A stretch of DNA of 64,000 nt. It comes from Ranitomeya imitator. Lineage: Eukaryota. The first letter of the stretch is position 1; each line of letters starts with the position of its first letter. The translations under genes were made by a program, and so were the position numbers. Location of the stretch: contig NC_091287.1 of assembly GCF_032444005.1 (NCBI RefSeq), positions 353,338,001 through 353,402,000 on the forward strand, read 5' to 3'. Below are positions 1 through 63,996 of this stretch, piece after piece. Below the pieces are notes generated by a model, which was not told where the DNA came from, ran no database searches, and saw only the letters and a program-made list of their open reading frames with translations.

Positions 1-407
1 CTTTAGGGTTTTGTGTAGACCGCAAAGTTACCTTTTCTGTCCTCGCTCTGTTAAGAAAGTCGGGCCTCACTTTCCTGAATCTATTTCATCTCTACGTTTG
101 TCTTTTCATCTTAACTCACAGTCATTATATGTGGGGGGCTGCCTTTTCCTTTGGGGTATTTCTCTGAGGCAAGGTAGGCTTATTTTCTATCTTCAGGCTA
201 GTTAGTTTCTCAGGCTGTGCCGAGTTGCATAGGCAGAGTTAGGCGCAATCCACGGCCGCCTCTAGTGTTGTTTGGAAAGGATTAGGGATTGCGGTCTGCA
301 GAGTTCCCACGTCTCAGAGCTCGTTCTATGATTTTGGGTTATTGTCAGATCACTGTATGTGCTCTGACCGCTATGTCCATTGTGGTACTGAATTGCCTTT
401 CATAACA
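1..407 (-). mobile_element. Gypsy-family LTR, partial (runs off window start)
   Basis: Reverse-complement homologue of the LTRs at 25152-25922 and 50987-51757; ends in ...CATAACA (rc TGTTATG, the LTR terminus). Confidence 0.85.
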
Positions 408-411
408 CTAA

Positions 412-1120
412 GGGTACCGTCACACAGTGGCACTTTGATCGCTAGGATGGCACGATCCGTGACGTTCCAGCGATATCCTAACGATCTCGCTGTGTCTGAC
501 ACGCTACTGCGATCAGGGACCCCGCTGAGAATCATACGTCATAGCAGATTGTTTGAAACTTTATTTCGTCACTGGATCTCCCGCTGACATCGCTGAATCG
601 GCGTGTGTGACGCCGATTCAGCGATGTCTTCACTGGTAACCAGGGTAAACATCGGGTTACTAAGCGCAGGGCCGCGCTTAGTAACCCGATATTTACCCTG
701 GTTACCAGTGTAAATGTAAAAAAAAAAACACTACATACTTACATTCCCGGTGTCTGGTCATGTCCCTCGCCTGCTTCCCGCACTGACTGGTGAGCGCCGG
801 CCGGCCGTAAATTACAGCGGTGACATCACCACTGTGCTTTCCGGCTGTCCGGCGCTCACTGTCAGTGCAGAGAAGCACAGCGCCGAGGGACGCGACAGGA
901 ATGTAAGTATGTAGTGTTTTTTTTTTTACGTTTACGCTGGTAACCAGGGTAAACATTGGGTTACTAAGCGCGGCCCTGCGCTTAGTAACCCGATGTTTTA
1001 CCCTGGTTACCAGGGGACTTTGGGAGCTGTGTGACAGCTCTCCAGCGACCACACAGCGACGCTGCAGCGATCAACATCGTTGTCGTATCGCTGCAGCGTC
1101 GTTTTAGTGTGACGGTACCC
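412..1120. mobile_element. PIF/Harbinger-type MITE with internal ~70-bp palindromes
   Basis: TIRs GGGTACCGTCACAC / GTGTGACGGTACCC; TAA TSD at 409-411 and 1121-1123; same family as 27931-28654. Confidence 0.85.
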
Positions 1121-1619
1121 TAATAAGCTACAGCGTTGATGCACAAAAATATAAGCTCCACTGTCCCTGCAAAGAAGAGGTGGTGTTAGACAGTGGAAAT
1201 CGCTACAGCACAAGCAGTTTCAGGGTTAATCTTCCCTCCTTAACTATATCCCTTCTTCTGATGCAGCTGCAGCAACCTCTCCCTATGCTAAGATTGGCAG
1301 AAGTAAGATGGCGGTCGGTGTGCATGCACGCCCCTTTATAGCCCCTGTGACGCCGCAGAAAGCAAGCCAATCCCTGTCATGCCCTTCTCTTAGATGGTGG
1401 GGACCGAGACCTATGTCATCACGCTGCCCACACTCTGCGTCCTCCTTCATTGGATGAGAAATGGCGCTGAAAACGTCATACGAAACGTGACTTTGGCGCG
1501 CTAATCGCCGACCTCATGGCCGATCCCACACTAGGATCGGGTTGGGTTTCACGAAACCCGACTTTGCTGAAAGTCGGCGATTTTTTTAATTTGTCCGATC
1601 CATTTCGTCCAACCCTATG

Positions 1620-2860
1620 TATGACTAATTGAATCCATAAAAAAAAATTGGAATTTTTTTGGGAATGTTATGTACCACCAAAATTGAACACAAAGCATGT
1701 AAGACTGTATAGATGAGTAATTGAATCCAGACAAATTTTTCAATGCTTTTTTGGAGTCTTGTATACCATCGAAATTTCACAGAAAGCACCTAATACTGTA
1801 TGGATGACTAATTGAATCCAGACAAATTTTTCAACACTTTTTTTAAGTGTTATATACCACTGAAATGTCACAGAAAGCACCTAATACTCTATTTATGACT
1901 AAATGATTCCAGACATTTTTTTTCAACGCTTTTGTCAGGATCCCCAGGACTGCTATACTGGTCAGTACCTGGGTCCCGATGAGCACGCGACTATATGGGG
2001 GCTTACCGTAGACAGTAGAGAAGTTAGAATGTCCCGGAATGGCAGTTGGCATGCAGGACCTGTGGCACGTGACTGTCGGTGTGGAGCCGGAGGTGGAGTC
2101 AGCTGCGGGCCTCCCAGAGGGAGCAGCAGCTGTGAGAACTGGCGACCAGGAGCCGGAGCCAAGGGCAACAGGTAACCCAAATGGGCAAAGGTGCAAATGA
2201 GCATCGAGTATAAGGGGAGTCCTAAAACAGAGCCAAGGGTCAAAAGCTGAGAGGTACAAAACATACTCAGGAGTGAAGACAGTAGCATAGCCGGGAAACA
2301 AGCAGAAGTCAGACACCAAGAAGTCAAATAGATGGAACCGAATCAGTGGGTAGATGCACAATGGGGACAGACTGGGTCAAAAAACAGAGATCAAACAAAG
2401 CAGCAGGCACATCGCACAAATACAAAATGCACAGGCGTCACTTAAGTAAGCCAAGGGCACAAGTATAACTGATGAAGATGGAGGTCTGCAGTGGCTATAA
2501 AAACCCTCCCTATGCCCAAACTGAGGCCACAGTGTTAACCCCCGAGGCTCCAGCTCGATCTTAACCACAGGATCATTACAGCTTTTTTGGGGTGTTATAT
2601 TCCACCTTAATGTCATACAAAGCACCTAATACTCTATGGATGACTAATTAAATGCAATCAAATTATTCAACTCTTTTTTCAAGTGTTATATACCACCAAA
2701 ATGTAACAGAAAGTACCTAATACTGTAGGGAGGACTAACTGAATCCAAATTTCAACACTTGTTTGGAGTGTTATATAACACAGAATTTTAACACAAAGCA
2801 TCTAATACTGTATGGATGAGTAATTGAATCCAGAAAAAAGTTTTGAACGTAGACCCCTGA
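1620..2860. repeat. ~90-bp tandem satellite, interrupted by a solo LTR
   Basis: Recurrent unit GATGACTAATTGAATCCAGACAAATTTTTCAACAC...AAAGCACCTAATACT on both sides of 1933-2580. Confidence 0.8.
1933..2580. mobile_element. Solo LTR (648 bp)
   Basis: TGT...ACA ends; 5-bp TSD GCTTT (1928-1932, 2581-2585); shares CATGCAGGACCTGTGGCACGTGAC with 57907-58516. Confidence 0.8.
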
Positions 2861-2994: not shown

Positions 2995-4895
2995 ACTCTC
3001 ATAAGAAAGTGTAGAAAGTGTCTCCTGAAGCATGAGCTAAAGGCACAACGTTTCTGGAAAACACCCATGGAGTAGAAATCGTCACTACAGGTAAATTCCC
3101 AAGGGGGTGTAATTTCCAAAATGGGGTCACTTGAGGGGGGATTCTGCTTTTCTTGCAATTGTCTATGATATGGGGTCCGCAAAATATTCTAGGAGAATCT
3201 GCGCTCCAAGAGGCAAATAGCGCTCCGTCCCTCCTGAGTCTCGCCGTGTGGTCAACAGTACTGTACAGCCACATATGGGGCATTTCTACATTGAGCAGAA
3301 ATTGTGGGACACATTTTGGTGCCATTTTTACCCATTTCTCAGTATGAAAATGTAAAATCTGTGGCTAACACAAAATCTTGGTGGTAAAAATGTAAATAAT
3401 TTTTTCTTCACTGCCTAATCGTATAAAATTCTGTGATACACTTGTGGTGATAACATGATTACATGTAGTTTGTAAAATGGGGTCACTCATGGGGTGTTCT
3501 GCTGTTCTGGCACCTCATGGGCTCTACCAATGTGACATGTCACACTCAAACCAGTGCAGCAAAATCTGCACTGTAATATAGCGCTCCTTCCCTTCTGAAC
3601 TTTGCATCAAAAGTAGTTTTTGACCACATATGGGGTATCGATGTACTCACGAGAAATCGCAAAGCAATTTTTGGGGTACATTTTCTACTGTTACCCTTGT
3701 GAAAATGCAAAATTGGGGCTCAAAAACATTTTTGTGGAAAAAATGTGATTTTTTTTTTTAATTTTCACGGCTCAACGTTATAAACTTACATAGTAACATA
3801 GTAACATAGTTAGTGAGGCCGAAAAAAGACATTTGTCCATCTAGTTCAGCCTATACCATACTATACTATACTTCTGTGAAGTACCTGGGGTCGTGCTCAA
3901 CACACTATATATCTTCCCAGAAAGGTCTAGTTTCCAAAATGGTGTCACTTATGGGGGATTTCTATTGTTTAGGCACACCAAGGGCTCTCCAAACATGACA
4001 TGGCATCCACTAATTATGCCAGCAAATTTTACATTCAGAAACTCAAATGGCGCTCCTTCCCTTCTGAGCCCTGCCGTGCACACAAACAGTGCTCACGACA
4101 AATTGCACAACAAATTGTATGGTGCAGTTTCTCCTGTTACCCTTAAGAAAATGCAAAATTTGGAGCTAAAAAACATTTTCGTGAGAAAGATTAGATTTTA
4201 TTATTTTAACAACTCAACGTTATAAACTTCTATGAAACACCTGTTTCATAGATAAGTGGCGTCCGCTAATTATTCCAGCAAATTTTACATTCAAAAAGTC
4301 AAATGGCGCTCCTTCCCTTCCCAGATCTGCTATGCGCCCAAACAGTTGTTTTACCCCACATGTGGGGTATCGGTGTGCTCATTAGAAATTGAACAACAAA
4401 TTGTATTGTCCATTTTGTCCTGTCTAAAAAATGTATTTAAAAAAAATGTAAATGTTTATTTTTTTCCATCCACATTCCATTAATTCCTGTGAAACACCTG
4501 AAGTGTTAAAAACTTAATGAATGTGGTTTTGAGCACCTTGATGGGTGCAGTTTTTAGAATGGAGTCACTTTTGTTTATTTTCTGTCATATATGCCCCTCA
4601 GAGTCATTTCAAAAGTGATGTGGTCCCTAAAAAAATGGTTTTGTAAATTTTGTTAAAAAATGAGAAATCGCTGGTCAACTTTTAACCCTTCTAACTCCCT
4701 AGCAAAGAAAATTATGTTTCAAAAATTGTGATAATGTAAAGTAGACATGTGGGAAATTATATTTATTAACTATTTTATGTAACATGACTCTCTGATTAAA
4801 GGGTATCAAAATTAAGTTTTAAATGTGCAAAAATTTTAAAATTTTCACCAAATTTCAATTTTTTTTCTCAAATAAGCGTGTCATATCGAAGAAAT
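2995..4895. mobile_element. Truncated copy of the large non-autonomous piggyBac-like family with ~390-bp internal units
   Basis: Homologous to 12610-13200 and, in reverse complement, to 14214-16990; repeated AAATGG(G/T)GTCACT units. Confidence 0.7.
3788..3870 (-). mobile_element. Probable CR1-type LINE 3' end fragment
   Basis: ACATAGTA octamer repeats (rc TACTATGT tail) interrupting the host repeat; family assignment is inferred. Confidence 0.45.
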
Positions 4896-27930: not shown

Positions 27931-28654
27931 GGCCCCTTCACATTAAGCGACGCTGCAGCGATACCGACAACGATCCGGATCGCTGCAGCGTCGCTGTTTG
28001 GTCGCTGGAGAGCTGTCACACAGACCGCTCTCCAGCGACCAACGATGCCGGTAACCAGGGTAAACATCGGGTAACTAAGCGCAGGGCCGCGCTTAGTAAC
28101 CCGATGTTTACCCTGGTTACCATGCTAAAAGTAAAAAAAAACAAACACTACATACTTACCTACAGCTGTCTGTCCTCCAGCGCTGTGCTCTGCTTCTCTG
28201 CTCTCCTCCTGTACTGTCTGGGAGCCGGAAAGCAGAGCGGTGACGTCACCGCTCTGCTTTCCGGCTCACAGCCAGTACAGGAGGAGTGCAGAGCGCAGCG
28301 CTGGAGGACAGACAGCGGTAGGTAAGTATGTACTGTTTGTTTTTTTTTACTTTTAGCATGGTAACCAGGGTAAACATCGGGTTACTAAGCGCGGCCCTGC
28401 GCTTAGTTACCCGATGTTTACCCTGGTTACCAGTGAAGACATCGCTGGATCGGTGTCACACACGCCGATCCAGCGATGTCCACGGGAGATCCAGCGACGA
28501 AATAAAGTTCTGGACTTTCTTCAGCGACCAACGATCTCCCAGCAGGGGCCTGATCGTTGGTCGCTGTCACACATAACGATTTTATTAACGATATCGTTGC
28601 TACGTCACAAATAGCAACGATATCGTTAACGATATCGTTATGTGTGAAGGTACC
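27931..28654. mobile_element. Harbinger-type MITE with two inverted ~70-bp palindromes
   Basis: TAA-GGCCCCTTCACA ... TGTGAAGGTACC; same family as 412-1120. Confidence 0.8.
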
Positions 28655-28696: not shown

Positions 28697-28888
28697 AGGG
28701 AATCTGTCACCCCAAAAATCGTATATGAGCTAAGGCCACCGGCATCAGGGGCTTATCTACAGCATTCTGTTTTTCTTATCTTTCAGGGTATATTGGGGGC
28801 TTATCTACAGCATTACAGAATGCTGTAGATAAGCCCCTGATGCCTGTGGCCTTAGCTCATATACGATTTTTGGGGTGACAGATTCCCT
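28697..28888. mobile_element. Kolobok/T2-type MITE (192 bp)
   Basis: AGGGAATCTGTCACCCC ... GGGGTGACAGATTCCCT-TTAA; almost fully palindromic. Confidence 0.85.
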
Positions 28889-48790: not shown

Positions 48791-51700
48791 TTAAGGAGGG
48801 GTCACCGAACCCTCACCAGAGCCCCCAGGCCGATCAGGATGAGCCAAATGAAAAGCACGAACCAAATCGGCGGCATGAACATCGGAGGCAACAACCCAAG
48901 AATTATCCTCCTGGCCATAACCCTTCCACTTGACAAGATACTGAAGCTTCCACCTCGAAAAACGAGAATCCAAAATTTTCTCAACCACATATTCCAACTC
49001 CCCCTCAACCAACACCGGGGCAGGAGGATCAACAGATGGAACAACGGGCACCACATATCTCCGCAACAAAGATCTATGGAAAACATTGTGGATGGCAAAA
49101 GAGGCTGGAAGGGCCAAACGAAAAGACACAGGATTGATAATCTCAGAAATCTTATAAGGACCAATAAACCGAGGCTTGAAGTTAGGGGAAGAAACCTTCA
49201 TAGGAACATGACGAGAGGACAACCAAACCAAATCCCCCACACGAAGCCGAGGACCAACACACCGACGGCGGTTAGCAAAACGCTGAGCCTTTTCCTGGGA
49301 CAACGTCAAATTGTCTACCACATGAGTCCAAATCTGCTGTAACCTGTCCATCACAGAATCAACACCAGGACTATCAGAAGGCTCAACCTGCCCTGAAGAA
49401 AAACGAGGATGGAAACCAAAATTACAAAAGAAAGGCGAAACCAAAGTAGCCGAACTGGCCCGATCATTAAGGGCAAACTCGACCAACGGCAAGAAAGTCA
49501 CCCAATCATCCTGATCAGCAGACCCAAAGCATCTCAAATAGGTTTCCAAGGGCTGATTAGTTCGCTCAGTTTGGCCATTGTTCTGAGGATGGAACGCCGA
49601 AGAAAAAGACAAATCAATACCCATCCTAGCACAAAAGGCCCGCCAAAACCTGGAAACAAACTGGGAACCTCTGTTAGACACAATATTCTCCATGCAAACG
49701 AACCACATGCTGAAAAAGCAATGGAACCAAATCAGAGGAGGAAGGCAATTTAGGCAAAGGTACCAAATGGACCATTTTAGAGAACCGGTCACAAACCACC
49801 CAGATAACAGACATCCTCTGGGACACAGGAAGATCCAAAATAAAATCCATGGAAATATGCATCCAAGGCCTCTCCGGGACGGGCAAAGGCAAAAGCAACC
49901 CACTAGCGCGGGAACAGCAAGGCTTGACTCGGGCGCAAGTCCCACAGGACTGCACAAAAGCACGGACATCACGCGACAAGGAAGGCCACCAAAAGGACCT
50001 AGCAACCAAATCTCTGGTACCAAAAATCCCAGGATGACCAGCCAACACTGAACAATGGACCTCAGAAATCACCTCACTCGTCCATCTATCAGGAACAAAC
50101 AGCTTCCCCACAGGACAGCGGTCAGGCCTATCAGCCTGAAATTCCTGAAGCACCCGCTGCAAATCAGGGGAGATGGCAGAAAGAATCACCCTTCCTTAAG
50201 AATGCCAACCGGCTCAAGGACTCCAGGAGAATCCGGCAAAAAACTCCTAGAGAGGGCATCCGCCTTAACATTCTTAGATCCTGGAAGATATGAGACCACA
50301 AAATCAAAACGGGAGAAAAACAGGGACCACCAAGCCTGTCTAGGGTTCAGCCGCTTGGCCGACTCAAGGCAAATCAAATTCTTATGATCGGTCAAGACCA
50401 CAATGCGGTGCTTGGCTCCCTCAAGCCAATGTCGCCACTCCTCAAATGCCCACTTCATAGCCAACAACTCCCGATTGCCGACATCATAATTGCGTTCCGC
50501 AGGCGAAAACTTTCGGGAAAAGAAGGCACATGGCTTCATCAAGGAACCATCAGAATTCCTCTGTGACAAAACGGCCCCTGCCCCAATCTCAGAAGCGTCA
50601 ACCTCAACCTGAAAAGGTGGAGAAACATCCAGTTAACGCAACACAGGGGCAGAAGTAAATCGGCGTTTAAGCTCCTGAAAGGCCTCAACAGCCTCAGAGG
50701 ACCAATTAGTCACATCAGCGCCTTTCTTCGTCAAATCGGTCAGGGGTTTAACCACACTAGAGAAGTTGGCAATGAAACGGCGATAAAAATTAGCAACGCC
50801 CAAAAATTTCTGAAGGCTCTTCACAGATGTGGGTTGAATCCAGTCATGAATGGCTTGGACCTTAACAGGATCCATTTCTATAGACGAAGGTGAAAAAATA
50901 AACCCCAAAAAAGAGACCTTCTGAACTCCAAATAGGCACTTAGACCCCTTCACAAATAGAGCATTATCACGAAGGATCTGGAATACTGTTATGAATAGGT
51001 AATTCAGAACCACAATGGACCTTGAAGTTCAGAGCACACAAAGTGACCTGACAATAAGCAAAAAACATAGGACGAGCTCTGAGACGTGGGAACTCTGCTG
51101 ACCACAATCCCTAATCCTATCACACCACACTAGAGGTAGCCGTGGATTGCGCCTAACGCTCCCTATGCAACTCGGCACAGCCTGAGAAACTAGCTAGGCC
51201 TGAAGATAGAAAAATAAGCCTACCTTGCCTCAGAGAAATTCCCCAAAGGAAAAGGCAGCCCCCCACATATAATGACTGTGAGTTAAGATGAAAGTACAAA
51301 CACAGAGATGAAATAGATTTAGCAAAGCGAGGCCCGACTTACTGAATAGACCGAGGATAGGAAAGATAGCTTTGCGGTCAACACAAAAACCTACAAACAA
51401 CCACGCAGAGGGGCAAAAAGACCCTCCGCACCGACTAACGGTACGGAGGTGCTCCCTCTGCGTCTCAGAGCTTCCAGCAAGCAAGAAAAACAAATTAAAG
51501 CAAGCTGGACAGAAAATATAGCAACAAAAGTAACACAAGCAGAACTTAGCTTATGCTGAGCAGACAGGCCACAGGAACGATCCAGGAGGAAGCAAGACCA
51601 ATACTAGAACATTGACTGGAGGCCAGGATCAAAGCACTAGGTGGAGTTAAATAGAGCAGCACCTAACGACTTAACCTCATCACCTGAGGAAGGAAACTCA

Positions 51701-52819
51701 GAAGCCGCAGTACCACTTGTGACCACAGGAGGGAGCTTGATCACAGAATTCACAACAGAATACCATCCTGACCTGCTTCACATGAGACTCCCAATCATCG
51801 GAAAAAATCAAAATATCATCCAAATACACAATCAGGAATTTGTCAAGATAATTGCGGAAAATATCATGCATGAAAGACTGGAACACAGATGGAGCATTAG
51901 AGAGCCCAAATGGCATCACAAGGTATTCAAAATGGCCTTCGGGCGTATTAAATGCAGTCTTCCATTCGTCACCCTGTTTAATACGAACAAGATTATATGC
52001 CCCTCAAAGGTCAATCTTGGTAAACCAACTAGCCCCCTTAATCCTAGCAAACAAATCAGAGAGCAAAGGTAAAGGATATTGGAATTTGACCGTGATCTTA
52101 TTGAGAAGGCGATAATCAATACAGGGTCTTAAGGAGCCATCCTTCTTGGTAACAAAAAAGAATCCCGCTCCCAATGGTGACGAAGACGGCCGAATATGCC
52201 CCTTCTCTAAAGACTCCTTAACATAGCTCAGCATGGCGGCATGCTCTGGCGCAGACAGGTTGAAAAGTCGGCCCTTAGGGAACTTACAGCCAGGAATCAA
52301 GTCAATAGCACAATCACAGTCCCTGTGTGGTGGAAGGGAACTGGACTTGGGCTCATCGAATACATCCTGGAAATCTAACAAAAATTCAGGAACATCAAAA
52401 GAGGGGGAAGAGGAAATTGACATCAAAGGAACGTCACTATGTACCCCTTGACAACCCCAACTAGTCACAGACATTGATTTCCAATCCAGCACTGGATTGT
52501 GTACTTGTAACCATGGAGAACCCAGTACAACAACATCATGTAAATTATGCAACACCAGAAAACGGCAATCTTCCTGATATGCAGGAGCCGTGTACATAGT
52601 CATCTGCGTCCAGTACTGAGGTTTATTCTTGGCCAATGGTGTAGCATCAATACCCCTCAAGGGTATGGGACTCTGCAAAGGCTGCAAAGAAAAACCACAG
52701 CGCCTAGCGAATTCTAAGTCCATTAAGTTCAGAGCAGCGCCTGAATCCACAAATGCCATGACAGAAAAAGATGACAATGAGCAAATCAAGGTCACAGACA
52801 GGAGAAACTTAGGCTGCAC
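48791..52819 (-). pseudogene. pol: Gypsy pol (protease, RT, RNase H, integrase, chromodomain), frameshifted and interrupted
   Basis: AFVDSGA (PR); [25 protein letters not shown] (RT); CAFFSRK (RNase H); H..GHPG...C..C, SMDFI, NGQTER (IN); FIGPY; EYVVEKILDSR...YLVKWKGYGQEDNSWV (chromodomain). Confidence 0.95.
50987..51757 (-). mobile_element. Solo LTR of a related subfamily inserted into the RT coding region
   Basis: 771 bp; TG...CA ends; 6-bp TSD GAATAC; RT sequence resumes across it. Confidence 0.93.
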
Positions 52820-52963
52820 AGTACTAATGGTAACAGATCTAGCAACCCTCTTAACCCTGCTGTTCTGTTGGTCAAAAATGACCGACTTTGAACTTCAATA
52901 TTCTTTAAAATATTCAAGATGCGGCTCTGAAACCCGTGGCCGACCGACCCATTCTCATTTAAG

Positions 52964-53877
52964 TCAATCAACCACAAGTTTCAGAACCGCATCTTGAACA
53001 CCCCCAAAAATACCAAAGTTCAAAATAGGTCTCCCCAGACCGAACAGAACAGCAGGGTTAATACGCTTAGGGCAATCAGAAATAGTATGAACAGAATCAC
53101 CACAGTAAAAACACAGCCCATTCTGACGTCTGTATCCCCTCTGTTCCGCTCTAGTCAAAATCCTATCACATTTCATGGGCTCAGGACTTTGCTTAGAGGA
53201 CACTGCCATATGGTGCACCACTTTGCGTTCGCGCAGGCGCCGATCAATCTGAATGGCCAGAGACATAGATTCGCTCAAACCAACAGGCGTGGGAAACCCC
53301 ACCATAACATCTTTAAGGGCTTCAGAAAGACCCTTTCTGAAAATTGCTGCCAGAGCGTTCTCATTCCATTTAGTGAGCACAGACCATTTTCTAAATTTCT
53401 GGCAGTATAATTCTGCCACTTCCTGACCCTGACACAGGGCCAACAGTGTTTTCTCAGCATGCTCTACAGAGTTAGGTTCGTCATACAATAATCTGAGCGA
53501 TTGAAAAAATGCATCTACATTAAGCAATGCCGGATTCCCTGACTCAAGTGAGAATGCCCAGTCCTGAGGGTCGCCACGCAGTAGAGAAATAACTATCTTT
53601 ACTTGCTGAACGGGGTCACCAGGGAACGGGGTTTCAGAGAAAAAAACAATTTGCAGTTATTTTTAAAGTTCAAAAACTTAGATCTATCCCCGTAAAACAA
53701 ATCCGGAGTAGGAATTCTAGGCTCTAAGGCCGGAGTCTGAACCACATAATCTTGAATAGTCTGTACTCTTGCAGCAAGCTGATCCACATGAGAAAGCAAA
53801 CCCTGAACATCCATGCCTGCATCCAAATCCCGAATCACCCAGAGATCAAGAGGAAGGAAAAAGACAAAACAAACCAA
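52964..53877 (-). pseudogene. gag: Gypsy gag with CCHC zinc knuckle, frameshifted
   Basis: PTPDLFYGDRSKF; LAIQIDRRLRER; LCFYCGDSVHTISDC. Confidence 0.9.
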
Positions 53878-54779: not shown

Positions 54780-55560
54780 TGGTTTATTACTATTGTATTT
54801 TTGTTTGTTTTTCTATACTTTTACTATTTCTGGAAAATATTAACCCTTTTTTCCTTTCCTGTTATATTATTGAAATTTTCTAAATAAAGAATATATCCAA
54901 AAAAAAAATTTATGTATCAAAAAATGATACCAATAAAAACCCTAAGTTATAAAACACAAACAAGCCATCACTCATGTCTGTCATTTGTCACTGGAACTAC
55001 ACCCCTAGATAGCAATGAAGTTTCCAAAATAGGGGTCACTTGAGGGGGTTTCTGCTGTTTTAGTACCTCTGGGGCTCTGCAAATGAGACATGGTGTCTGC
55101 AATCTATTCCTGCCAAATTAACGCTTCAAAATCCAAATACCGCCTCTTCCCTTCCAAGCTCTGCCATGTGCCAAACAGCAGTTTTTGACCAAATATGTGA
55201 TATTGTCAAATTCAGGAGAAATTGTGTAATACATTTTAGGGTCCATTTTCCCGCATTACCCCTTGTGAAAATTAAAAATTTGCAGCTAAAGCAATAATCT
55301 AGTAGAAAAAATGTAATTTTTCCATTTTGTCAATCCACTTTGCCTCAATTCCTGTATAGTACCTGAAGGGTTAGCAAATTTACTAACTGCAGTTTAGAAT
55401 AAACTGAGATGTGCAGTCTTTAAAATGTTATCAACTTTGGGTGTTTTCTGATATAAAGGGCCCCTCAAAGTCCCTTCAAAACCAAATTGGAAATGGATTT
55501 GTAAATTTTCTTGACTTTTTTAAATTGCTGCAAAATTTTAACCCTTCTAATAGAAGAAAA
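54780..55560. mobile_element. Decayed fragment of the ~390-bp-unit piggyBac-like family
   Basis: TTTCCAAAATAGGGGTCACTTGAGGGGG and downstream motifs shared with 3100-4700. Confidence 0.6.
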
Positions 55561-55599
55561 GAAAACAGCAACAACAAAAGCAACAATAGCAGAAATTGG

Positions 55600-56986
55600 T
55601 GTTTTCCCCTCAAGCTTTAAACATGCCTCCATCACACCTATCCTCAAAAAGCCCTCCCTTGACCCATCCTCTGTATCTAGCTATCGCCCTATATCACTTC
55701 TCCCCTTTGCCTCAAAACTACTGGAACAACATGTCCATCTTGAACTGTCCTCCTATCTATCTTGCTGCTCCTTCTTCGACCGCTTTCAATCAGGCTTCCG
55801 GTCACACCACTCCACTGAAACTGCCCTAACTAAGGTCACCAATGACCTATTAACTGCCAAGAGCAAGCGACTCCTCCTGGACCTGTCCTCTGCCTTTGAC
55901 ACAGTGGACCATTCCCTGCTGCTACAGACCCTCTCATCCCTTGGCATCACAGACTTGGCCCTATCCTGGATCTCGTCATACCTAACTGACCGGACATTCA
56001 GCGTCTCCCACTCACACACCACCTCCTCACCTCGCCCCCTATCTGTCGGAGTCCCTCAAGGTTCAGTTCTAGGACCCCTGCTCTTCTCCATTTACACCTT
56101 TGGCCTGGGACAGCTCATAGAATCTCATGGCTTTCAGTATCATCTCTATGCTGACGACACACAGATCTACATCTCTGGACCAGATATCACCTCCCTACTA
56201 ACCAGAATCCCTCAATGTCTGTCTGCTATTTCATCCTTCTCCGCTAGATTTCTAAAACTTAACATGGACAAAACAGAATTCATCATCTTTCCCCCATCTC
56301 ACACGACCTCCCCAACGAACCTATCCATTACAGTAAACGGCTGCCCACTCTCCCCAGTCCCACAAGCCCGCTGTCTTGGGGTAATCCTTGACACTGATCT
56401 CTCCTTTAAACCACATATCCAAACCCTTTCCACTTCCTGCCGCCTCCAACTCAAAAATATTTCACGGATCCGTACATTCCTAAACCAAGAATCTGCAAAA
56501 ACCCTAGTCCATGCCCTCATCATCTCCTGCCTCGACTACTGTAACCTCCTGCTCTGTGGCCTCCCCTCTAACACTCTTGCACCCCTCCAATCTATTCTAA
56601 ACTCTGCTGCCAGACTAATCCACCTGTCCCCCTGCTATTCCCCGGCCTCTCCCCTCTGTCAATCCTTGCACTGGCTCCCCATCACCCGGAGACTCCAGTA
56701 CAAAAGCCTAACCATGACATACAAAGCCATCCACGACCTGTCTCCTCCATACATCTGCGACCTCGTCTCCCGGTACTTACCTACACGCAACCTCCGATCC
56801 TCACAAGATCTCCTTCTCTACTCCCCTCTTATCTCCTCTTCCCACAATCGTATACAAGATTTCTCTCGCCTATCACCCCTACTCTGGAACTCTGTACCAC
56901 AACATATCAGACTCTCACCTACCATCGAAACCTTCAAAAAGAACCTGAAGACGCACCTCTTCCGACAAGCCTACAACCTGCAGTAA
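55600..56986 (+). pseudogene. L2 ORF2 reverse transcriptase and C-terminal domain (no endonuclease)
   Basis: [48 protein letters not shown]; the ORF-track start at 55511 lies in unrelated flank. Confidence 0.92.
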
Positions 56987-58516: not shown

Positions 58517-59896
58517 ATGACATAATATAAAAATATATGGCCTTGATAGGCTTAAAATTAGGCAATTCCTGGCAACCATCCGAACAACTTATGCTCGAAA
58601 TACCCTTCTCCAAGTTCATTACTGATGTCTTTTCCCCTTGGCATCGTGATAACACATGCCTGAATGTTCCAGACCAGCAAATTGACAAAACTTCTGCTTT
58701 TATACAGGTGCTCATACTTACCAATGAACAATTAAGGGCATTTAATTTGAAGAACTTGGCTGCTAATTACTTTATTAATTACTATTGAAGCAGCAAGGGT
58801 TTACTTAGCTTTTAACACACTGTCATGTATACAGTTGTGCTTAAACGTTTACATATCTCAGCACAATTTTTACTTTCCTGGCCTTTTTTCAGAGATTATG
58901 ATTGACAACACCAAAACATTTTCTCCACTCATGGTTAGTGGTTGGGTGAAGCCATTTATTGTCAAACTACTGTGTTTTCTCTTTTTTAAATCATAGTGAC
59001 AACCCAAAACATCCAAATGACCCTGATCAAAAGTTCACATACCCTGGTGATTTTGGCCTGATAACATGCACAGAAGTTGACACAAATGGGTTTGAATGGC
59101 TACTAAAGGTAACATGCTCACCTGTGACCTGTGTGTGCATAAAAGCTGAGTGAATTTCTGTGATCCAGACAGACTCTTGCATTATTTCATCCAGCCACTG
59201 ACATTTCTGGATTGTGAGTCATGGGGAAAGAAAAAGAATTGTCAATGGATCTACGGGAAAAGGTAGTTGAACTGTATAAAACAGGAAAGGGATGCAAAAA
59301 GATATCCAAAGAATTGATAATGCCAATCAGCAGCGTTCAAACCGTGATTAACAAATGTAAAATCAGGGGCTCTATAAAAACAAAACCACGGTTAGGTAGA
59401 CCAACAAAAATGTCATCCACAACTGCCATGAAAATTGTTTGGGATGCAAAGAGAAAAACTCCACAAATAACATCAGCTGAAATACAGGACTCTCTGAAAA
59501 CTAGTGGTATGGTTGTTTCAAATTGCACAATAAGGAGGCACTTGAAGAAAAATGGACTGCATGGTTGAGTCGCCAGAAGAAAGCCATTACTGCACAAATG
59601 CCACAAAATATCCCGCCTACAATACGCAAAACAGCACAGAGACAAGTCTCAAAGCGTCTGAAACAAGGTAATTTGGAGTGATGAGACCAAAATTTAACTT
59701 TTTGGCCACAACCATAAAACCCTACATTTGAAGAGAGGTCAACAAGGCCTATGATGAAAGGAAAACCATTCCTACTGTAAAGCCTAGAGGTGGATCACGG
59801 GTGTTTGAGCTAAAAAGGCACAGGAAACTTGGTCAAAGTTGAAGGAAAGATGAATGCAGCACGTTATGTAGCGTTTCCCTTACTTCGGGTCTTGGG

Positions 59897-60309
59897 TCTC
59901 TCCCTAAGGTGGCTAGCATATATGTATCGCTTGCTCACCGAGCCCCACTCCATACAGCCAACCAATTCCAGCCCTGTGCTGATGAGGGCCTAAAGCCCGA
60001 AACACGTGTCCACAGGTAGGAATTGGTTGGATGTGTAAATTTAGAAACTAATCCGCAGCATTGCACGCTTGGCGGTTCCAAGCGCTGTGGATTAGACAGG
60101 GGTGGAAAGAGATGATTTGCATAGTTCCGCCTACTGCAAAGGATTCTGGGTAAACCTGCTATTCTTTGTATTATGCTGCTTGCAAGTACTTTCCGTTTCA
60201 GGAAAGCATCCACTATGTATTTCCTTTAAGTAGAGGGCTTTTCGGTCTCTTTCGTCCCGCTACATTTAGCCCAACTTGGGTCTCTCCCTAAGGTGGCTAG
60301 CATATATGT
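59897..60309 (+). mobile_element. Retrozyme-like / Penelope-mobilised non-autonomous retroelement (384-nt period)
   Basis: 13-bp TSD TTCGGGTCTTGGG (59884-59896, 60310-60322); identical 35-nt repeat at 59891-59925 and 60275-60309; contains a hammerhead ribozyme. Confidence 0.75.
59973..60016 (+). ncRNA. Type I hammerhead ribozyme
   Basis: Stem I CCTGTG/CACAGG; core CTGATGA; stem II GGGC-CTAAA-GCCC; core GAAA; stem III AC-ACGT-GT; cleavage triplet GTC at 60008-60010. Confidence 0.92.
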
Positions 60310-62989
60310 TTCGGGTCTTGGGGACACTCGCTTTGCACGGGAATAACGCATACAGGCACGATTTTCTCACACAAATTAAGTCCGTTCCGGTTTTTTAAAG
60401 CATCATAAACTGCACCATAAGCCAGGCTACACACAGTCTGTTACTTTAACACATGTGGCTTTACAAAACATTCGGTAGTCACGTCTTTTCTCTCCATTAC
60501 AGTTCATTAGATGCATCAATGGAACATATTAAACCCTGACAGTCTGTTCCAATGGGAGATACGTCTCTGCCGTATATTACAGGTTTTTCCCACACCAGGG
60601 GTTACCTCTCAGGAGCTTCAGCTCCACACACTGACTCCTGCCAGTGCTGGTTCACAGGGAAACTGCATCACTGGGATCACTGTCCTTGTGACCAGGGCAC
60701 CTCTGATAGTCCAGACCCACAGTAGGAACTGTAGCTTCCCAACACAGAAACCATCTCAGGCTCTGCAGTTGCAGCCTTTCCATGCGCTTCCAGGAAGTCC
60801 AATCACAGGCACATCCAACACACAGGCCATCAGTCCATGATCTTACCAAGTGCTTACAGGACTCCAGTCCATCCCAGGACAATCCAACACTCTGACCATT
60901 GCAGGACTCACACTCTTACCAGGTGCTTGCAGGACTCCAGTCCATACCAGGACAATCCAACACCCTCGAGCATTCAGTCCATAGCCTCAGCAGTGCTTCC
61001 AGGACTACAGCCCTCTTCAGGACAATCAAACACTGACCGTCCACTAGGTCCACAGTCTCAGGTGCTTGCAGGAGTTCTCCAATTGTCAGGAGACTCCAAC
61101 ACCAACCGTCCAGGACCTTGTACATGGAACAAACAGATCCATACACAGGGACCATGTGACCCACACCCTGGTCACATTATCTAGGTGTAACCACTCCCCT
61201 GGGTGGGTGTGGATGTGTGTGCCTAGTTCGACCCTCCTATCTCTCATATCTAGCCATGCCAGTCTCCCATTAGCATTACACAATTACTTGTGGGACTACA
61301 GGTCCCAGCACACCAAATTAACTTCAGACTAACAGCGCAGAGTGTCTTCCTCTGCAACACACACACCGGCCATTTACACTCCTGCCGGACTTTGTCTCAT
61401 CACATTTATGCCTCCAAGCGCATCTTGAAGCACACACACAGCACCCCCTGGCTGTAACGTGGGTCACTGCACCACAGTTGTCAGCAAATAATGGCGGAAA
61501 ATTTGCAATCATCAGCCTGGAAGCTACACATGGGACGTACTTGGACATTCCAACATGACAATGATCCAAAACACAAGGCCAAGTCCACCTGTCATTGGCT
61601 ATAGCAAAACAAAGTGAAGGTTCTGAAGATGCCATCTCAGTCTTCTGACCTCAATATCATTGAACCACTCTGGGGAGATCTCAAGCAGTTCATGCTAAAC
61701 AAACCAGGAATTTACAGGAACTGGAGGCTTTTTGCCAAGAAGAGTGGGCAGCTTTACCAGCTGAGAAAATAAACTACCTCGTCCACAACTACCACAAAAG
61801 ACTTCAAGCTGCCATTAATGTTAGAGGGGGCAATACACGGTATTAAGATATGGGGTATGTGAACTTTTGATCAGGGTCATTTGGATGTTTTGGGTTGTTA
61901 TTATGATTTAAAAAGAGAAAACACAGTAGTTTGACAATAAATGGCTTCACCCAACCACTAACCATGAATGAAGAAAAAGTTTTCGTGTTCTCATTCATGT
62001 TCTCTGATAAAAGGCCAAGAAAGCAATAATTCTGCCAGGGTATGTAAACTTTTGAGCATAACTGTATATGAAATGTAAAATCTCTCCTCCATTCAAGTGA
62101 AAAAATTAAACACCTTTAATAATGCATATCCAAACAGCAATGTTTCAGTTCCTCCTGGAACCTTACTCAAGCCAGCTTCAGAAAGGTTCCAGGAGGAACT
62201 GAAACACTGTTGTTTGGATATGCACTAATAAAAGCATTTTTTTTTTCATGAAGGAAGGAGTGTTGTTTTTTGATTTTTTGTGGACCTGGTTGAGGTCTGC
62301 AGAGGATTTATACCCTATAGTACTTTGATGTTGCTTCTAGTCGTTATGTATTTATAGCTATACAGTAAACGTTTTAGGCAGGTGTAAAAAAAAAAGTCTA
62401 GATGGTAATGATGCTTTAAAAAAATAGAAGTGTTAATAGATTATTTTGTTATCAATTAATAAAATGCAAAGTAATTGCACAAGATAGAAATCTAAATCAC
62501 ATCAATATTTGGTGTGACCACTCTTTGCCTTCAAAACAACATCAAATCATCAATTTTTTTAAGAACAACTGCATACAGAGTTAAAGAACTTGGCAGGGAG
62601 CTTATTCCAAATATCTTGAAGAACAAACCATAGATCTTCTGTGGATGTAGGCTTGCGGAAATTCCTGTTTCTTAATGTAGTACCAGACAAACTCTGTGAT
62701 GCTGACATCAGAGCTCTGTCAAAGCTATATGTTGTCCTGCTACAAAATGTGATTATAGCCAATCAGAGACTACCATAATTTTTTTATAATTTTATAGACA
62801 ATCATCTTGGCTATCTCATACATAAATTTGACTTATAACTGTTTAAAATATAGTGAGCTATGCAGATTCTTGTCATGTCACTGTATTGTTATTGTTTTGC
62901 TTCTGGTGGTGGAAAAATCTTTTTCTTTCTGTATACTACAAATTACAACCTGTTCTCAAATTCTCTAATAGCTCAGGTCAATGGTTCGC

Positions 62990-63697
62990 ATCAAGCTGCA
63001 GCCATGAAGGACATTTCCCAAGAAAAGAGAAACAGCATCTTCCAGGTCATCGATAGTGGTCTCTCGGGCAAGAAAATTTCCAAATTGCATCATGTGAATG
63101 CAATGACAGTTGAAAGAATACAAAATTTTGTCCATCCATCCATTCAAAAGCCAAGAGATGAACGTCCAGGCAAAATATCGAAGTCAACAAATTGATTCAT
63201 CACAACATCTACAAATTCTAGAGCAACAAACATGGCAATGGAGGGTGGCTTGTATGTTTTATAATAATGAGATCACAGATGTCCATGCAAACACTGTGCG
63301 ATGCATTTAACATAAATCTGGAATTGTGGCAAAGAAACCTCAACTTCAATATCATAGGAAGTGTTGGTTCGAGCTTGAATAAAAGTAGAAGATTGGAAAT
63401 GGGCGATTTGGAGGGAAGAGAGGGTTCAAATTAATCTGGAAGAAACAAAGGAAACAGGGGCTAACAAATCAAAAATGGAACGAACTGTCAAGTTGGATGA
63501 AGTCTGATGATATGGGGTTGTTTCACAGTCAAAAGCATTGGATACTTGACCCGGATCGATGGTGGTCTCAACGCTGAAATGTATGTGAGTATCCTACAAG
63601 ACAAGTTACTTCGTACACTCATGTTCCATGGGTATGAAAAGGACACCATTGTTTTTCAGCAGGACAACGACCCGAAGCAAAAACTGAGAGTGGCTAA
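62990..63697 (+). pseudogene. Decayed Tc1 transposase
   Basis: MKDISQEKRNSI...; MIWGCFTVKSIG...FQQDNDPK; cut by the MITE at 63698. Confidence 0.8.
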
Positions 63698-63996
63698 GGC
63701 TACGTTCACATTAGCGTTGCGTCGGGCGCAGCCACGGCGACGCATGCATCATGCGCCCCTATATTTAACATGGGGGCGCATGGACATGCGTTGTCTTGCG
63801 TTTTGTGATGCATGAGTCATTTTTGGCACAAGCGTCAGGGCGCAGAGGACGCAGCAAGTTGCATTTTTTTTGCGTCCAAAAGCAAGCCAAAAATGGACAC
63901 ATGCGTCACAAAACCATGTGTTTTTGCATGCGTTTTGCATGCGTTGTGCGTTGCGTCGCCGACGCAACACACAACAACGCAAATGTGAACGTAGCC
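63698..63996. mobile_element. Harbinger-type MITE (299 bp)
   Basis: TAA-GGCTACGTTCACAT ... ATGTGAACGTAGCC-TAA; inverted copy of 20191-20492. Confidence 0.9.

Follow-up and report, generated by a model that had tools for sequence, protein, structure and literature searches.

We analysed a 64,000-nt stretch of the genome of the frog Ranitomeya imitator (assembly GCF_032444005.1, contig NC_091287.1, positions 353,338,001 to 353,402,000 of the forward strand; hereafter the window, in whose numbering all positions are given) and found in it a discrete insert of 413 bp with a hammerhead ribozyme. The insert is unrelated to its flanks and is bounded by an exact duplication of 7-13 bp of target sequence. 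We consider it probable that it represents a solo copy, 1.08 units long, of a repeat of the metazoan non-LTR (long terminal repeat) retrozyme type that was inserted by target-primed reverse transcription. On how animal retrozymes return to DNA, the circle-templated model given in reviews stands against the sole biochemical study of the presumed partner enzyme, which favours unprocessed linear RNA and internal initiation. As the insertion described here is young and has kept both of its junctions, it shows the fresh product of such an event, in this case a template of more than one unit, an uncut ribozyme site, a target-site duplication of 7-13 bp, a 3' junction without target homology and a 5' junction with microhomology.

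The insert lies between two identical copies (100% identity) of the 13-mer TTCGGGTCTTGGG. The probability that a given 13-mer is matched at a fixed position is ~1.5e-8 (4^-13), so that a flanking repeat of this kind is not due to chance. An exact 35-mer occurs twice with a spacing of 384 nt (39 nt at 97% identity when extended). The second 35-mer is directly adjoined by the right 13-mer, and the first shares 6 nt (CTTGGG) with the left 13-mer. As CTTGGG can be attributed to the target or to the unit, the duplicated target measures 7-13 bp and the redundancy 29-35 nt. The pre-insertion site is unambiguous and reads …CCCTTAC TTCGGGTCTTGGG GACACTC…. The 13-mer duplication, the 35-mer repeated 384 nt apart and the CTTGGG overlap had been described in an earlier reading of the window made from the sequence only, and they were recovered here at the same positions. 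The insert consists of 29-35 nt of a preceding unit followed by one full unit, at 59926-60309, of a 384-nt non-coding repeat and ends in ...ATATATGT. At the 3' junction the unit would continue with ATCG while the target reads TTCG, that is one mismatch followed by 3 nt, and there is hence essentially no priming homology. In the phase of the unit the insert ends 85 nt upstream of the ribozyme cleavage site, which is itself uninterrupted within the insert. The coordinates of all features are given in Table 1.

Table 1. Features of the insert and of the elements that enclose it (window coordinates)
Feature	Position	Strand	Basis
Target-site duplication, left copy TTCGGGTCTTGGG; last 6 nt CTTGGG = 5' junction microhomology	59884..59896		repeat search
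413-bp insert, 1.08 units	59897..60309	+	repeat, ORF and Pfam analyses
Terminal redundancy, 5' copy, exact 35-mer	59891..59925	+	repeat search
Canonical type I hammerhead ribozyme	59954..60036	+	Rfam HH9 match 59961-60033, fold prediction
Long imperfect hairpin (12 + 6 bp) within the unit	60048..60095	+	circle fold prediction
Terminal redundancy, 3' copy, exact 35-mer	60275..60309	+	repeat search
Target-site duplication, right copy	60310..60322		repeat search
Older non-coding 1.6-kb insertion X, host of the hammerhead unit	59868..61467		broken transposase frame
Tc1/Sleeping-Beauty-like DNA transposon containing X	58828..62068	+	217-bp terminal inverted repeats, 89.4% identical

The ribozyme was the sole hammerhead-like motif on either strand of the window. 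A loose descriptor gave 0.11 matches per shuffled window. It possesses the CUGAUGA and GAAA cores and the GUC triplet, with cleavage predicted after C60010 (GUC/C). Helix I is made up of 6 bp, an internal loop and then 12 bp. Helix II has 4 bp and carries a loop of 5 nt, while helix III has only 2 bp, which are closed by the palindromic tetraloop ACGU. The best Rfam family was HH9 with 31.1 bits (E=1e-5 on an 801-nt stretch) against a gathering score of 52 bits, and no family, HH9 included, was reached in the scan at gathering thresholds. HH9 (RF02275), the best match over the full model, is a conserved intronic hammerhead of amniotes that shares the type I layout, its helix I being interrupted and its helix II 4 bp long, but the copy found here scores below gathering and resides in a repeat within transposon debris rather than at a conserved intronic locus.

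The fold of a ribozyme monomer had a predicted energy of -36.3 kcal/mol and helix III was not predicted, whereas for two copies an 8-bp intermolecular helix III was predicted at -83.3 kcal/mol (versus 2 x -36.3 kcal/mol). These models indicate a hammerhead of dimer-dependent architecture, as in canonical metazoan and amphibian hammerheads (PMC4209133, PMC7229834). The same layout was present in 29 distinct environmental hammerheads with the segment GAAACACGUGUC, although this agreement is partly built in because these sequences were chosen for pairing. A single hammerhead in which helix III forms only between two ribozymes is predicted not to release unit-length RNA. On this folding model, the solo copy is probably inert and a dead-end offspring. 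Solo monomers from amphibian genomes have been counted as family members and interpreted as non-mobile offspring (bioRxiv 10.64898/2026.07.22.740005).

The sequence-only reading had also noted that coding domain, poly-A and terminal inverted repeats are lacking, and our analyses agree. Neither a poly-A stretch at the insert end nor a terminal inverted repeat was found in the insert sequence, each reading frame of the unit is closed by two or more stops per turn even though the length is a multiple of three (384 = 3 x 128), and no Pfam family matched the open reading frames (ORFs) of the unit. On account of the stops in all frames we rejected an ORF that would run endlessly round the 384-nt circle, and a coding element was rejected for want of an open frame and a Pfam match. 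A short interspersed element (SINE) was likewise rejected, as there is no tRNA-like head, no poly-A and no similarity to the neighbouring L2-type long interspersed element (LINE). A BLAST search of the unit and its flanks against the window returned only the self match, with no second copy and no relation to the LINE. The terminal redundancy contains a TATA-like CATATATG, after which an initiator-like TCAC comes about 18 nt later (the two at 59917-59939), and they resemble the arrangement of TATA and initiator (Inr) in a rotifer Penelope pseudo-LTR (PMC3846280). That this pair serves as a promoter of the unit would be pure speculation.

In its features the insert corresponds to the metazoan non-LTR retrozymes (Cervera & de la Pena 2020, PMC7229834), which include newt satellite 2, the axolotl HHR_Amex repeats and the Xenopus families of Li, Clavereau & Pollet 2026. 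For metazoan retrozymes, units of 150-450 bp, a GC content below 50% and target-site duplications of more than 4 bp have been reported (PMC7229834). Shared with them are a non-coding unit of a few hundred nt, a GC content below 50% (47.7% in the insert, 47.9% in the 384-nt unit), a target-site duplication of more than 4 bp, and a canonical type I hammerhead whose helix III is weak and palindromic and requires a dimer. LTR, primer-binding site, polypurine tract and poly-A are absent in both, and solo monomers are known among the described families. Ribozyme, size, composition and target-site duplication are all those of a retrozyme, and of the features compared only the tandem array is lacking at this site, where there are 1.08 units and one ribozyme rather than an array with at least two ribozymes from which a unit can be excised.

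Non-LTR retrozymes were described from all seven of the amphibian genomes surveyed (7/7), with a mean family consensus of 316 bp, 57 families in Xenopus, widespread solo monomers and a relationship with the pseudo-LTRs carried by Penelope-like elements (PLEs) (bioRxiv 10.64898/2026.07.22.740005). Amphibian non-LTR retrozymes, their solo monomers, target-site duplications above 4 bp and the circle-templated model have thus already been published, and the locus adds one clean junction example. It is a new instance, and possibly a new frog family, of this published class of elements, likened to the described families by features and not by sequences. Plant LTR retrozymes (Cervera et al. 2016, PMC4918200) are also non-autonomous, hammerhead-bearing elements and are thought to be spread by circular RNA, but their type III hammerheads, LTRs of ~350 bp, primer-binding site and polypurine tract, and 4-bp target-site duplications have no counterpart here.

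Since the insert spans an uncut cleavage site and exceeds one unit, a linear monomer cut by the ribozyme cannot have served as its template. This leaves a circle closed by ligation, or else an uncut concatemer to which a tandem array gave rise by transcription. In the mechanism that we propose, a nick made in the bottom strand where TTCGGG... has its left edge would prime cDNA synthesis at a point of the RNA without real homology to the target, the reverse transcriptase (RT) would copy one whole unit and ~30 nt more, and the end of the cDNA would then be joined to the top strand via the 6-nt microhomology CTTGGG. The enzyme would most likely be a Penelope-like RT/GIY-YIG endonuclease acting in trans. 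For PLEs, 5' junctions with microhomology, as in LINEs and a rotifer Penelope, and target-site duplications of 8-10 bp have been described (PMC3846280), and internal initiation without homology has been reported for a PLE RT (PMC11167929). The earlier proposal that the RT went slightly more than once around a 384-nt circle or multimer holds as far as a template longer than the unit and an intact cleavage site are concerned, but the circle as such is only a candidate, since an uncleaved multimer would yield an identical product.

One form of the template would be a monomeric circular RNA that was cut and then ligated, on which the RT made one turn, displaced ~30 nt of its own cDNA and stopped. 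The insert spans the cleavage site as this requires, and the redundancy of 35 nt is exact, as if both copies derived from one physical sequence. A stop within 35 nt past a full turn would be natural on a circle with limited strand displacement and has a prior of ~9% (35/384) for a randomly placed end on a concatemer, although this argument is biased because the locus was picked for its near-unit length. A circular fold of the unit, opened at the cleavage site, is highly structured (-132.9 kcal/mol, z ~ -5.9 versus mononucleotide shuffles), and the model of multimeric cDNA templated by a circle has been published for non-LTR retrozymes (PMC7761336). Against it, there is no scar by which a ligated junction could be told from an uncut one, the substrate that predominates for PLEs in vitro is multi-copy RNA left unprocessed, and ribozyme mutants insert equally well (PMC11167929). 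We put forward the circular template only tentatively. It is likewise somewhat doubtful, if conceivable, that the insert is the footprint of an RT that passed once round a 384-nt circular ribozyme RNA, with the overlap of 29-35 nt representing the displaced start of its own cDNA.

The template might also have been a multimeric RNA, transcribed from a tandem array and still linear and uncleaved, on which the RT started at a defined internal site, and the redundancy would then be a miniature pseudo-LTR or correspond to the PLE 'tail'. PLE insertions typically consist of a 5'-truncated copy followed by a full copy (PMC8557442, PMC11167929, PMC3846280), and their optional tail of 30-40 bp, which reflects the spacing of two RT start sites, compares with a redundancy of 29-35 nt here. 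This agreement in size may be a coincidence; tail and start sites are definable only from several copies. The 3' junction, essentially without target homology, matches the internal initiation of PLEs, but no tandem source array was found in the window. We regard such a linear template as a serious possibility that falls short of being probable. At a single locus, circle and concatemer would look alike. Should it be true that most solo copies end in short overlaps at permuted positions, this would be the first sequence-level evidence for circle-borne movement.

The involvement of PLEs raises the further question whether the insert is itself an isolated pseudo-LTR of an autonomous PLE, namely the 3' end of a heavily 5'-truncated insertion, which the sequence-only reading had listed as its alternative. 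PLE pseudo-LTRs (Arkhipova 2006/2013; Craig et al. 2021; Frangieh et al. 2024) share with the locus a hammerhead in a terminal repeat, insertions composed of a truncated and a full copy, variable target-site duplications and microhomology at the 5' junction, and their optional extension of 30-40 bp is of about the size of the redundancy. In most PLE insertions 5' truncation has left one terminal repeat, and the retrozyme families of Xenopus are sister to PLE pseudo-LTRs (bioRxiv 10.64898/2026.07.22.740005). However, the period here is 384 nt instead of several kb, the target is not AT-rich, and a truncated PLE would not come round to its own beginning again within 384 nt unless it is the unit itself that forms the repeating template. 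The ribozyme is of the canonical kind (helix I 6 bp, helix II 4 bp, helix III 2 bp with palindromic tetraloop) and differs from the minimal PLE hammerhead with its helix II of 7-8 bp, helix I of 4-5 bp and no loop 3 (PMC4209133). Moreover, no RT or GIY-YIG ORF is attached to the insert. Remnants of a Penelope-like RT or GIY-YIG domain were found neither in the 37 ORFs between 48.8 and 64 kb that were scanned against Pfam, where L2-type RT, Ty3/gypsy and Tc1 were the only domains, nor within ~4 kb of the insert, the nearby RTs being those of an L2-type LINE and a Ty3/gypsy remnant. The canonical ribozyme and the missing remnants weaken the pseudo-LTR explanation, which we consider distinctly unlikely.

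Several observations weigh against a solo retrozyme inserted by target-primed reverse transcription. We describe a single locus, and no other member of the family was reached in the collections searched. The target lacks the AT-richness of the site preferred by the one PLE endonuclease that has been characterised (PMC11167929). No PLE was seen in the window, and the partner enzyme is taken from the literature only. The insert begins only 29 nt from the 5' edge of the sequence that hosts it, which is mildly suspicious (~5% by chance, an estimate). Finally, the assembly has N gaps, so that a longer array may have been collapsed. The true locus would in that case be a tandem array of n + 0.08 units that was reduced to 1.08 units by unequal recombination or by the assembler. 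With the fractional part and the target-site duplication kept, the outcome would look identical, and metagenome contigs with the same ribozyme type do show terminal overlaps in the style of an assembler. The sequence itself bears no sign of such a collapse, and solo monomers are common in Xenopus (bioRxiv 10.64898/2026.07.22.740005). We regard a collapse as unlikely, and it would be compatible with the retro-insertion reading rather than opposed to it.

The host of the retrozyme-like insert is not an LTR, as had been assumed in the sequence-only reading, but a non-coding insert of 1.6 kb, here called X, within a Tc1-like DNA transposon. The transposase frame of this Tc1/Sleeping-Beauty-like element is interrupted after ...MNAARY (59867) and is taken up again with QQIMAENL (61482), from which it follows that X was inserted into the transposon. 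X contains a 73-bp minisatellite at 60849-61033 (2.6 copies) and might be flanked by a decayed 13-bp target-site duplication of its own (59855-59867 / 61468-61481; 2 substitutions and 1 indel in 13, p ~0.02). We also considered the flanks in X as an older copy of the 384-nt repeat and rejected this, as no homology was found (local alignment score 20 versus a shuffle mean of 19).

All 48 of the 48 repeated positions of the hammerhead insert are identical, whereas the inverted repeats of the enclosing Tc1 element have diverged by 10.6%; the chance of zero changes in 48 positions at the divergence of the Tc1 ends is ~0.005. For CpG, the observed/expected ratio amounts to 0.55 within the insert, compared with 0.30 for X and 0.21-0.28 for Tc1. 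Judging from the identical repeats and the better-kept CpG, the insert looks younger than X and its Tc1 surroundings. The same data bear on the possibility that insert and X form a chimera that arose in one event, in which an RT on X RNA would have switched, close to the 5' end of X, to an abundant retrozyme RNA and back again 13 nt behind, with the apparent target-site duplication as an artefact of template switching. The short distance of 29 nt between the unit and the 5' edge of X and the microhomologies at both switch points would fit, but two switches and a backtrack of 13 nt are required. The inner repeats are perfect (48/48) next to the decayed duplication around X (2 substitutions and 1 indel in 13), and CpG is kept twice as well in the insert, which together argue for two events of different age. 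A chimeric origin appears most improbable to us.

Searches for relatives of the unit were made at the level of protein, ribozyme and literature. The 92-aa spurious ORF within the unit gave 0 matches in a protein search, and an exact-protein look-up of the neighbouring ORFs found none on record. A family-specific hammerhead pattern had 0 matches in the metagenome collection and 0 in the collection of bacterial and archaeal genomes, a helix-I-specific pattern had 0 matches, and so had a general hammerhead pattern in viral contigs. Strings from the ribozyme and the terminal repeat yielded only unrelated matches in the full-text literature. In metagenomes the general pattern retrieved 62 loci, about 38 of which are real hammerheads. 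We rejected these loci as members of the family, as only the ribozyme core of ~33 nt matches the window, and two long ORFs on metagenome contigs that had been considered as PLE proteins were rejected as well, since they are not PLE proteins.

Eleven of the metagenome contigs (L003, L004, L006, L008, L028, L038, L039, L047, L048, L053, L061) carry a type I hammerhead and have exact terminal overlaps of 99-127 nt, from which we conclude that they are circular or tandem units of ~0.9-2.1 kb. Four others (L023, L052, L054, L056) contain diverged tandem units of 1.16-1.42 kb that are 93-99% identical. Both groups may represent large retrozyme-like repeats or ribozyme-bearing circular RNAs of eukaryotes. 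A further contig (L032) encodes an animal Ig/Unc5-like protein at 27-2471 (+), and downstream of this ORF there is a hammerhead-like match at 3528-3560 (-) which has weak helices (3 and 4 bp) and failed the stricter alignment filter.

The surroundings of the Tc1-like transposon contain further mobile elements. Upstream of the insert an L2-type LINE encodes an open RT ORF of 491 aa at 55511-56986 (+). The best matches of this protein were found in poison frogs, with identities of 85% in Dendrobates tinctorius, 83-89% in Phyllobates terribilis and 71-78% in Ranitomeya imitator as compared to 65% in Xenopus, which points to a dendrobatid-like host rather than Xenopus and suggests that the LINE copy is fairly young. 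Remnants of Ty3/gypsy type lie at 48791-53527 (-) and comprise an integrase with SH3 and chromodomain, an aspartyl protease, an RT start and a gag-like ORF. A second Tc1-like remnant was found at 62860-63815. In addition, near-perfect palindromic hairpins at 28202-28288, 28729-28856 and 62144-62204 showed sub-threshold matches to microRNA (miRNA) families on both strands and are most likely inverted-repeat hairpins, similar to miniature inverted-repeat transposable elements (MITEs), rather than miRNA genes.

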